The notes beneath the pieces are model-generated. The model was not told the origin of the DNA and searched no databases. It saw only the letters and a program-made list of their open reading frames with translations. This document shows, in pieces, positions 35,709-37,856 of a stretch of DNA of 64,000 nucleotides. Each line of letters starts with the position of its first letter. Within the stretch, counting starts at the first letter, position 1. The DNA comes from Selaginella moellendorffii (Eukaryota > Plantae > Lycopodiophyta): NCBI RefSeq assembly GCF_000143415.4, contig NW_003314262.1:3212603-3276602 (forward strand), written 5' to 3'. The translations under genes and the position numbers were made by a program.

Positions 35709-37856
35709 TCACACACTGGCTTCCCCATCCTGAATTAAGCTATCTCCTTTTCGCTCGGCTTCATGCGTGGGCAGCAATGATGACGATCCCACGAAGCTCC
35801 AGGCCAGCCTGTTCACACCACAAGCCTTGCGCAGTAGTGGTGGGTAAAGGTGACGTCCGTGCTCCTCGATGAGAGATCCCATGGTCGCAGTCCTGATTTG
35901 CAGAACCTCAAACTCATCGCCAGACACAGCAGCATCGCTCCAAGGCAGGGTGTTGCCTCCCAGCATCTTGAGGCAGCAATAAAGCAAGCTCTCCTCGTCG
36001 TGCACCACGTCGCTGGGCCTCCCCCCGCAAAAGTAACAATCCGGGGACATCTCCCAGTTGGGGATCTTAGGCATCCCGTACACCACGTCCAGGCCCGGCC
36101 AGGCCTTGTCCACCGCAGGTGCTAGGGTCGAAAATGGACGACCACAGGCCAGCCCCCAGTCTATCAAGCTGTAGACACCACCCTTGAGGCAGATGTTTTC
36201 GAGACAAACATCCCCGTGAATGACTCCTTTCGTGCCACTAGCCTCGAGAGCCTCATACAGCTGCTTGCTCATCTCATAAACGTCAGCCGGTGCAAACTGC
36301 CTCGAGAGCTGCTGCTTCTCCACAGAATCACCGGCGTCCTTGACAAGCATCGCTGGCCTGTTGACACCTTCCATTGCCACTGCAAGAGCAACACCGTCAC
36401 CCAGCATTGCCCTGGATATCATATCTCTCTCCGTCTGGAACCACCTTTCCCAGCCTCCTGTAGGTAGCTCGTCAGGTTCCTCAAGGGCCTTGCTGCGTGC
36501 CTCTGCTTCTGGGCCAACTTTGAGCCACCACACTTCGCCCTCCCACAAGACTTTCATAACCATGGATATCTTGTTGTTCCGGGTAGCTCCCACGACAGTT
36601 ACCACAACTTCCTTGGAGGGAGGAGTAACTCTTGTCTCGCTTGCAAGCTGGAGATACTCGCTGCCGACCCAGTAACCAGCCTGGGTCATGAGTTTGAGGC
36701 TGCCGTATTTGCGCTGGAAGCCGTCCTTGTTCATTTCGCCACGAGCACTCATGTTGGACGCATTGGTCATCACTACCCGATAAAGAGCAGCGGCCACCCA
36801 CTCCAGAGACGGTGACTCGATGTCTACCACGTAGGAATCCCCTGGTTCCAAATCCTCATTCGCAAGTGGAAGCAGCCGCCCGTCATAAGTTTTCACGCGT
36901 CGCCCATAAGCATGGATCTGCCTCACGCATTGCACGTCAATGCCGTTCCCGACAAGGCCAAGGACTTCATTCTGAAACGTGTAGAACAGCTGGTATCTGC
37001 TTCTCAGCCTCCACAACACGTTACCAAGAATCACCACCTGTCCCCTGGCTTCGGCAATCTTACGGTTATCACCCTTAGTAGTCTTCAACTCCATAAAGAT
37101 CCAAGAGTCGCCGATTTTGAAGAAACTGTCTGGCCTTCTAGAGTCAAAAATAGGGTCCTCAGCGCCTTTCGAGCCCCACGTAATGTTAACGAGCACCCCT
37201 TCTGCAGCAGCTATAGCCTTGGCAAGCTCCACGAACAGAATACGCTGCCTTCGATACGATTCCACCCCCTTATTGCTCTTGTCAGATTCATCCGTCACTA
37301 CTTGGGTCAGGCATTCCTTGGGAAGAGCCCCCAGGACGACGGCCTTCTTGCTTGCCCAAAAGTTCTGAAACCTGTCAAGCGTGATGTCGCTGTTCCTCGC
37401 GCTGGGGGTCCTGTCCACTTTAGTAGAGCCATATCGACCGAGACTGTAAGGATTGTCCTCTTTGGGCAGCCACTCATTGATGCTCGAGAAATCTACCACG
37501 GGACATCCCCCCATGGCGCTCTGTCCCATGGCCTGCCACCTCCTAGTCAGATCGCCGTGAAACTCCAAGGTCTCCTGGTTATAGCTGTCGCAGTCCGAAG
37601 AATCTCTCCTGTCTGGCAGTCTTCGTATGAAGGGCACGAACACTCTGGCCCGTACGAGGGGGTGTTCCCCTGCATTGGCAAGCGCCTCCTCCGTCCTACT
37701 CTGGACGGTAGAGGAAGAGGACTCGAGGTTGGCTTCTATGTCAACCACCTCGTGTTGACACAGCAAAGGCATGAGCTTGTTCAAAGCCTCCCTCCACTGC
37801 AGTGAGTTTGTGAGCTACGGACGTAGTGAGACTCTCATGAAAGAACTTACCGCCAT
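35709..37856 (-). CDS. PD-(D/E)xK restriction-endonuclease-fold domain fused to a FunK1/CR-type protein kinase (about 697 aa); exon 1 ATGGCG (37856-37851), 54-nt intron, exon 2 37796-35709
   Basis: Nuclease motif RRPDSFF..WIFMELKT..EARGQ. Kinase motifs WWLKVG, TE (helix C), VIHGDVCLENI, YSLIDWGLA, HDEESLLY and LPW. A GTAAG..CTGCAG intron joins the ATG in frame. Confidence 0.8.

Follow-up and report, generated by a model that had tools for sequence, protein, structure and literature searches.

In the Crinkler/RHS (CR) proteins, the pairing of a restriction endonuclease-like (REase) module with a protein kinase is a recognised architecture, and it accounts for about one-sixth of CR C-termini as described in PMC5289972. 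One such protein, CRN8 of P. infestans, has been described as REase4 plus kinase, and its toxicity has been ascribed to the REase part (Zhang et al. 2016, summarised in PMC5289972 and PMC11064341), and CR-like proteins are reported there from non-pathogens, land plants included (PMC5289972, PMC11064341). Nuclease-kinase fusion or co-occurrence has also been noted, in PMC3424549, for the PD-(D/E)xK superfamily. Here we describe a gene of the lycophyte Selaginella moellendorffii whose product may have the same order of modules. The gene lies on the minus strand of a stretch of 64,000 nucleotides (contig NW_003314262.1, positions 3,212,603 to 3,276,602; hereafter "the window"), at window positions 35709-37856, and corresponds to the deposited model SELMODRAFT_403558.

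SELMODRAFT_403558 is a real and intact gene, already annotated but uncharacterised. Sequence conservation and model comparisons support the assignment of its C-terminal 280 residues to a eukaryotic-type protein kinase-like domain with a complete set of catalytic residues. On the best reading, which is tentative and which we put slightly below an even chance, the gene is a lineage-specific resident of the genome and encodes an intracellular enzyme that couples this kinase to a divergent PD-(D/E)xK module. Such a protein would be soluble and intracellular, with three regions. The central domain (about residues 96-350) would be the divergent PD-(D/E)xK module, in which Asp219, Glu232 and Lys234, positioned on a predicted beta-hairpin, would bind a divalent metal, and it would cleave or bind nucleic acid. 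The fused kinase might then regulate or report on the nuclease activity by auto- or trans-phosphorylation, by analogy with the kinase-nuclease logic proposed for the Crinkler/CR REase-kinase C-termini. The least supported step of this scheme is the role, which would most likely be intracellular conflict or stress signalling (a defence response or one triggered by nucleic acid).

If the central domain is a nuclease, the protein would be a plant's own version, minus the header, of the REase-kinase modules which oomycete and fungal Crinklers deliver into hosts, and it would bear on the origin of the module and on whether early-diverging land plants use it for defence or for stress signalling of their own. 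Otherwise, the gene represents an uncharacterised, species-restricted family of atypical kinases, which is of interest for kinome cataloguing and for the fast birth and decay of lineage-specific genes. Since the gene model is already present in public annotation, the sole new element is the domain interpretation.

Gene structure, second haplotype and constraint

An uninterrupted open reading frame (ORF) of 691 codons occupies 35709..37784 on the minus strand; at the local composition, the chance of an open frame of this length is about 3e-14. Upstream of this frame an ATG (37856-37854) and one further codon precede a 54-nt intron (37797-37850, GTAAGT...CTGCAG), which joins in frame 4 codons ahead of the start of the 691-codon ORF. 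Both the frame of about 2.1 kb and the 2-codon first exon with its 54-nt GT-AG intron had been picked out, with correct coordinates, in an earlier account of this DNA made from its letters alone (the sequence-only reading). The deposited protein, 697 aa in length (EFJ37310.1, UniProt D8QRT2, scaffold GL377566.1), is labelled "hypothetical protein" or "Protein kinase domain-containing protein" in the public records. When compared separately, the products of exon 1 and exon 2 each match this protein (P0017) exactly, and the splice model with the 54-nt intron is also used in the deposited models P0001 and P0017. For the searches described below, the query was the exon-2 ORF from its first in-frame TTG, 4 codons short of the whole of exon 2; the exons were searched unjoined, exon 1 with its 2 codons being below searchable length. 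Residue numbers follow the ORF (the 691-codon frame starting at 37784). The features of the gene, some of which can be compared with those of a collinear locus (L003, see below), are listed here.

35709..37856, minus strand: whole gene, ATG to stop (SELMODRAFT_403558 / EFJ37310.1, 697 aa), defined by the open frame, the splice signals and identity to the deposited model
37851..37856, minus strand: exon 1, 2 codons (Met-Ala), from the splice model, with the same start in L003
37797..37850, minus strand: 54-nt GT-AG intron, conserved in L003 and present in models P0001 and P0017
35709..37796, minus strand: exon 2, 695 codons plus stop, from the open frame and the match to the deposited protein
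37500..37796, minus strand: N-terminal variable region (ORF residues 1-95 plus the 4 upstream codons), predicted helical and poorly conserved between subfamilies
36735..37499, minus strand: orphan central domain with a PD-(D/E)xK-like motif set (ORF residues 96-350), from conservation and the predicted order of secondary structure
37128..37130, minus strand: Asp219 of "PD", a candidate metal-binding residue, from motif position and conservation
37083..37091, minus strand: Glu232-Leu-Lys234, a candidate "(D/E)xK", with E/D and K kept in full-length paralogues
37038..37049, minus strand: ARGQ motif, residues 246-249, invariant in full-length members
35805..36644, minus strand: protein kinase-like domain (ORF residues 381-660), from Pfam APH/Pkinase, PDB profile and Foldseek matches
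36519..36521, minus strand: Lys422, the beta3 lysine in "WWLK", from conservation
36195..36218, minus strand: non-RD catalytic loop HGDVCLEN (His523-Asn530), from conservation
36153..36161, minus strand: DWG, residues 542-544, the DFG equivalent, from conservation
37869..37877, plus strand: AAACCCTAG, a telo-box-like element 13 nt upstream of the ATG, with 6 window copies versus 0.55 expected; not intact in L003

Further motifs lie at residues 218-219 (PD), 421-422 (LK), 541-544 (IDWG) and 595-599 (HDEES). All of the motifs that the sequence-only reading had named (PD, ELK, ARGQ, LK, HGDVCLEN, IDWG and HDEES) are located where it placed them, and they are shared by paralogues of just 37-51% identity.

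The window is matched collinearly, over about 13 kb and at 76-96% identity, by the locus L003 (GL377581.1, SELMODRAFT_411800); thus, this locus represents either the other haplotype or a very recent duplicate, and it is treated below as the second haplotype. The ATG, the intron and the open frame are all retained in L003, whose gene differs from the window gene by 17 substitutions and one 5-residue indel. The indel falls at about 37510-37535, within the variable N-terminal region, where the window allele has a 5-residue in-frame insertion (a short tandem duplication), giving 697 versus 692 aa. The open frame, the splice signals, the deposited model and this second haplotype together bear out the earlier suggestion of a real spliced host gene. 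The ratio of nonsynonymous to synonymous change (dN/dS) is 0.48 between the haplotypes (p=0.037) and 0.58 between the paralogues P0003 and P0004 (p=3e-4); it is below 1 in both domains, with synonymous changes in significant excess. The gene is under weak-to-moderate purifying selection, a constraint that is real but weak.

These values bear on the possibility that the locus is a decaying pseudogene or an annotation artefact. A dN/dS of about 0.5 and the degraded state of the closest paralogue (see below) are what such an explanation would draw upon. However, two diverged haplotypes both keep the 695-codon frame open, the synonymous excess is significant, the catalytic motifs are intact, and the splice signals are conserved, so that decay or artefact is hardly credible here.

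The kinase-like domain and the orphan central domain

Within the C-terminal domain, Lys422 (beta3), Glu452 (alphaC), His523-Gly-Asp525, Asn530 and Asp542-Trp-Gly544 are conserved, and the HxD, N and DWG elements are invariant in every family member that covers those columns. The catalytic loop is non-RD (it does not have the arginine-aspartate pair): full-length members have HGD at this point, kinase-only relatives HND. The domain does not contain a canonical glycine-rich loop. Scanned alone, the domain matches the APH model at 24.2 bits (cutoff 23.2); Pkinase matches four of four members (best E 3e-5, 20.5 bits versus a gathering cutoff of 31.7), and RIO1 matches two of four. In a PDB profile search, the stretch with the catalytic loop and the DWG matches casein kinase II (E=2e-3), and a PDB sequence search likewise turned up weak kinase matches alone. 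With a full-length model of low confidence (mean predicted local distance difference test score, pLDDT, 36.1), Foldseek returned 56 PDB matches at E<=1e-3; the 50 matches listed are all protein kinases, with probabilities of 0.98-1.00 and template modelling (TM) scores, on the target, of up to 0.50, in keeping with a bilobal kinase fold. Consequently, the conserved catalytic residues, the weak APH and Pkinase matches and the Foldseek result uphold the earlier proposal of a kinase half with a non-RD (HGD) loop.

The similarity of this domain to described kinases is limited in extent. The DWG variant of DFG, together with similarity in the catalytic loop, is common to this kinase and casein kinase II alpha, and the RD arginine is missing here as it is in Bud32, RIO and APH, to whose models there are weak matches. 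For all of these (casein kinase II, Bud32, RIO and APH) the similarity covers about 60-75 residues around the catalytic loop at marginal E-values and does not amount to orthology. The link between non-RD kinases and immune signalling is drawn from receptor-like kinases. Because the present kinase is too divergent, and because Bud32, RIO and APH likewise do not have the arginine, a step from the non-RD loop to immune signalling carries little weight here.

The case for a nuclease depends on the central domain. Asp219, Glu/Asp232-x-Lys234, ARGQ (246-249) and several more blocks are invariant or conservatively replaced between subfamilies that are only 37% identical; the aspartate and the (E/D)xK are kept in four full-length sequences, and the lysine becomes arginine in the degraded paralogue. 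Two AlphaFold2 models were built: one of the N-terminal half, from 8 sequences (mean pLDDT 40.8), and one of the full length, from 13 sequences (the 36.1 model given above). Both runs place a helix at 173-195, a strand at about 198-204, a strand at 220-224 immediately after Asp219, and a strand at 227-234 that carries the ExK, and in the second run alone these are followed by a helix at 240-262 that carries ARGQ. In these low-confidence models, the resulting alpha-beta-beta-beta-alpha order would be the canonical order of the PD-(D/E)xK core. As in the PD-(D/E)xK superfamily (Steczkiewicz et al. 2012, PMC3424549), the D...(D/E)xK would thus lie on a predicted beta-hairpin that follows a helix and a strand; unlike that superfamily, the domain does not have a family-level match or a confident fold.

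Several observations weigh against a nuclease-kinase enzyme that is maintained in the genome. Searches of the central domain against Pfam, PADLOC and PHROGs at E<=10 gave no match except one unnamed PHROG (E=0.13, in one of four members), and NCBIfam, run on the whole protein, gave nothing for the nuclease-like part. Both models are of low confidence and differ in what follows the ExK strand, Foldseek with the N-half model was uninformative (best E 0.76), and no conserved acidic residue is seen in the first helix. The pattern D...(D/E)xK is short and could easily arise by chance. As for the kinase, the Pkinase score stays below its gathering cutoff. The dN/dS of about 0.5 amounts to no more than weak constraint, and the degraded state of the closest paralogue in both haplotypes shows that upkeep across the family is uneven. 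The effective depth of the alignment is 2-3 sequences, and for this reason the failed fold prediction says little either way. In a separate search, the PDB profile of the central domain gave a single weak match to an animal-virus capsid protein, which is implausible and was treated as chance.

Taken with the conserved D...(E/D)xK...ARGQ motif and the compatible predicted order of secondary structure, these results leave a PD-(D/E)xK nuclease fold of the central domain at about an even chance. The earlier proposal of an REase half is therefore matched by the motif and by a low-confidence predicted order, and was not borne out by homology or a confident fold. Structure prediction, which had been suggested as a check for each half, led with the full-length model to protein kinases as the Foldseek matches listed, and for the N-half gave the low-confidence model and weak Foldseek result described above.

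The main alternative is that the protein is an atypical, lineage-specific kinase in which the central domain has an orphan fold with some task other than that of a nuclease (regulation, substrate binding or oligomerisation) and the PD...ExK is coincidental. Four libraries (Pfam, PADLOC, PHROGs and PDB) gave no homology to a nuclease family, there is no confident fold, the motif is short, and the kinase module is also found in P0006, P0007, P0015 and P0011 without an alignable central domain; each of these speaks for this alternative. A coincidence is harder to reconcile with the retention of the D, the E/D, the K and the ARGQ across subfamilies at 37% identity, and with the location of these residues on the predicted elements where a PD-(D/E)xK fold would have them. 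We consider this alternative clearly possible, if somewhat short of an even chance.

Family distribution and relation to Crinkler-type proteins

An exhaustive phmmer search of 1.84 billion representative proteins gave 13 matches. The 10 with E<=5e-5 all come from S. moellendorffii, and the other 3 are marginal and generic: two bacterial kinases and one oomycete kinase, each with a standard Pkinase domain (the oomycete and bacterial E-values range from 1e-3 to 1e-5). Profile searches of the same protein space, with the full length and with the central domain alone, found nothing beyond the phmmer relatives. By sequence similarity, then, about 15 billion proteins contain members of the family from S. 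moellendorffii alone. Nesting of the kinase within ordinary plant kinase families, which had been named as a result that would refute the earlier account, was not seen by similarity, the sole non-Selaginella matches being those marginal ones.

A haploid genome has about 3 intact full-length loci, namely this gene, P0003/P0018 and P0004, and the window protein shares 42% identity with P0003 and with P0004; this count and the dN/dS values of 0.48 and 0.58 answer two further checks that had been proposed. The family also includes degraded copies and kinase-only relatives. The closest paralogue, P0005/P0002, is 64-79% identical, with its homologous sequence distributed over 2-3 reading frames in both haplotypes, and so it is probably a decaying copy. 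Its loci (L005, about 9755-11491, and L006, about 10067-11859; SELMODRAFT_403342 / 412015) are annotated as proteins of 361 and 418 aa and have an Arf-type GTPase gene on one side and a zinc-finger gene on the other. The kinase-only relatives (P0006, P0007, P0015/P0010 and P0011) share the HND...N...DWG core and have different or unalignable N-terminal regions, and thus the kinase module may have joined several partners within S. moellendorffii. Within the genome, the subfamilies have diverged to saturated synonymous distance. Four locus tags of the family were looked for and are not mentioned in the literature searched; the proteins may have been listed by Zhang et al. 2016 as CR homologues from land plants.

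How close, then, is this family to the Crinkler/CR proteins? Compared by description, the order is the same, with a putative PD-(D/E)xK module followed by a protein kinase in one polypeptide, and in both cases the nuclease part is highly divergent in sequence. Unlike the Crinkler/CR proteins, the Selaginella protein does not have a ubiquitin-like (Ubl) header or a secretion signal, and its gene, a plant resident, has introns and host-like codon use. Its N-terminus (residues 1-95) is variable between subfamilies and predicted to be all-helical; Pfam at E<=10 found no Crinkler (Ubl) header in this region, and a crude hydropathy scan detected no segment resembling a signal peptide or a transmembrane helix. 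Among the phmmer and profile matches there is no CR protein, and beyond generic kinase motifs they reveal no relation outside Selaginella. The FunK1 kinases are, like this family, divergent, lineage-expanded and outside the standard plant groups. Unlike them, this family has no match to PF17667 (Pkinase_fungal), whether the whole protein is used (E<=10) or the isolated kinase domain of 4 members (E<=1), and no fungal homologues were found among the 1.84 billion representatives. Because the likeness to CR proteins extends to domain order only, with neither header, secretion signal nor sequence relation, we do not file the protein as a CR effector or as FunK1. The sequence-only reading had likened the gene to these families: a Crinkler/CR assignment is unsupported for want of a header and, by hydropathy, of a signal peptide, and a FunK1 assignment for want of a Pkinase_fungal match.

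It had also raised the possibility of horizontal acquisition. A Crinkler-type REase-kinase gene recently acquired from an oomycete or fungus would account for the architecture, which resembles that of the CR REase-kinase C-termini, and for the absence of the family from other plants in the database searched, and one of the marginal kinase matches is indeed an oomycete protein. However, neither the full length nor the central domain has a significant match outside Selaginella among the 1.84 billion representatives, and the oomycete and bacterial matches reflect generic kinase motifs in proteins with standard Pkinase domains. The G+C content at third codon positions (GC3) is 0.635 and codon usage is inside the range of the neighbouring genes; since both are host-like, there is no compositional sign of recent transfer. 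Spliceosomal introns are present, the subfamilies stand at saturated synonymous distance within the genome, and the Crinkler header is missing. Recent transfer is therefore unlikely, with a low probability, and this part of the earlier account did not hold up.

A bolder version of the nuclease-kinase reading is that this header-less, species-restricted intracellular family constitutes an endogenous conflict or cell-death module, for example, a suicide or defence enzyme triggered by nucleic acid. Judged from sequence, this is doubtful. Such a family would be an independent or extremely diverged plant branch of the REase-kinase architecture.

Genomic setting and promoter-proximal elements

The genes of the window include two PPR genes, an NYN-LOTUS gene, a DUF568 gene, an MFS transporter and tandem gulonolactone-oxidase-like genes, and public annotation places lipid-transfer-protein and ferritin genes less than 10 kb away. 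The GC content of the gene is 51-58%, compared with 28-41% for the AT-rich left flank, in which no recognisable ORFs were found. A Pfam scan of the flanking ORFs revealed no transposase, reverse transcriptase (RT) or integrase domain, and a repeat search detected no terminal inverted repeat (TIR) or long terminal repeat (LTR) close to the gene. Consequently, the description of this region as a "transposon graveyard" was overstated: the left flank is AT-rich, as had been seen, but the flanking ORFs are free of transposable element (TE) domains and the wider neighbourhood consists of ordinary plant genes.

In both haplotypes the gene lies between two direct repeats of about 700 bp (34426-35103 and 47869-48557) that are 77% identical and about 13.4 kb apart; these may be the LTRs of an old element or a dispersed repeat present twice. 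There are no TE protein domains between the two copies, and the paralogue loci L001, L002, L005 and L006 are without the repeat. The flank comparisons took in five related loci. Between the window and L001, L002, L005 and L006, DNA similarity is limited to the gene body and goes no further than the gene on either side, and the copies all have ordinary host genes around them (PI-PLC, PP2C, epimerase, NPH3, CCT, Arf GTPase, rhomboid, PPR and Frigida). Flanks with shared TIRs and target-site duplications had been named as the mark of mere TE cargo; when looked for, the copies were found to be without shared TIRs or LTRs. Because similarity stops at the gene boundaries and the repeat is absent elsewhere, the gene does not behave as just TE cargo.

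This evidence also bears on a more specific proposal, in which the gene is transposon cargo or a still-mobile transposon-derived gene and the window copy lies inside an old element bounded by the 34426-35103 / 47869-48557 repeats. The presence of this bracketing pair in both haplotypes and the gene-free, AT-rich left flank are in keeping with such an origin, and CR REase modules are themselves proposed, in PMC5289972, to be transposon-derived. In contrast, the four paralogue loci resemble the window within the gene body alone and do not carry the repeat, no TIR or LTR is near the gene, the flanking ORFs encode no transposase, RT or integrase, and every copy sits between ordinary host genes. 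TE cargo is unlikely, and we assign this proposal a very small probability. A resident host gene remains the preferred reading.

Just upstream of the gene, at 37869-37877, is the 9-mer AAACCCTAG, whose presence there had been pointed out from the letters and which is enriched in the window, with 6 copies (at 8960, 10455, 26659, 34105, 37869 and 62316) versus 0.55 expected. Several of the copies sit a short way before the start of a gene: this gene, the PPR gene that ends at 8811, and the ORF that ends at 62278. This pattern is consistent with a telo-box-like promoter-proximal element in Selaginella. In the other haplotype (L003), the copy upstream of the gene has one base missing and so is not intact. 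Two ACGT-core boxes (CACGTG and ACGTGG) at 37938-37956, about 80-100 nt upstream of the ATG, are kept in both haplotypes and may be G-box/ABRE-like (abscisic acid response element-like) promoter elements.

Other features of the window were noted in passing. The tandem gulonolactone/arabinonolactone-oxidase-like pair occupies 54611-60325 on the minus strand and has FAD_binding_4 and ALO/GULLO C-terminal domains. A perfect (TA)70 microsatellite at 42976-43116 accounts for all of the inverted and direct repeat calls near 43 kb, and two tRNA-Arg genes (6248-6320 and 30906-30978, anticodons CCG and CCT) account for the 80-bp self-match of the window.

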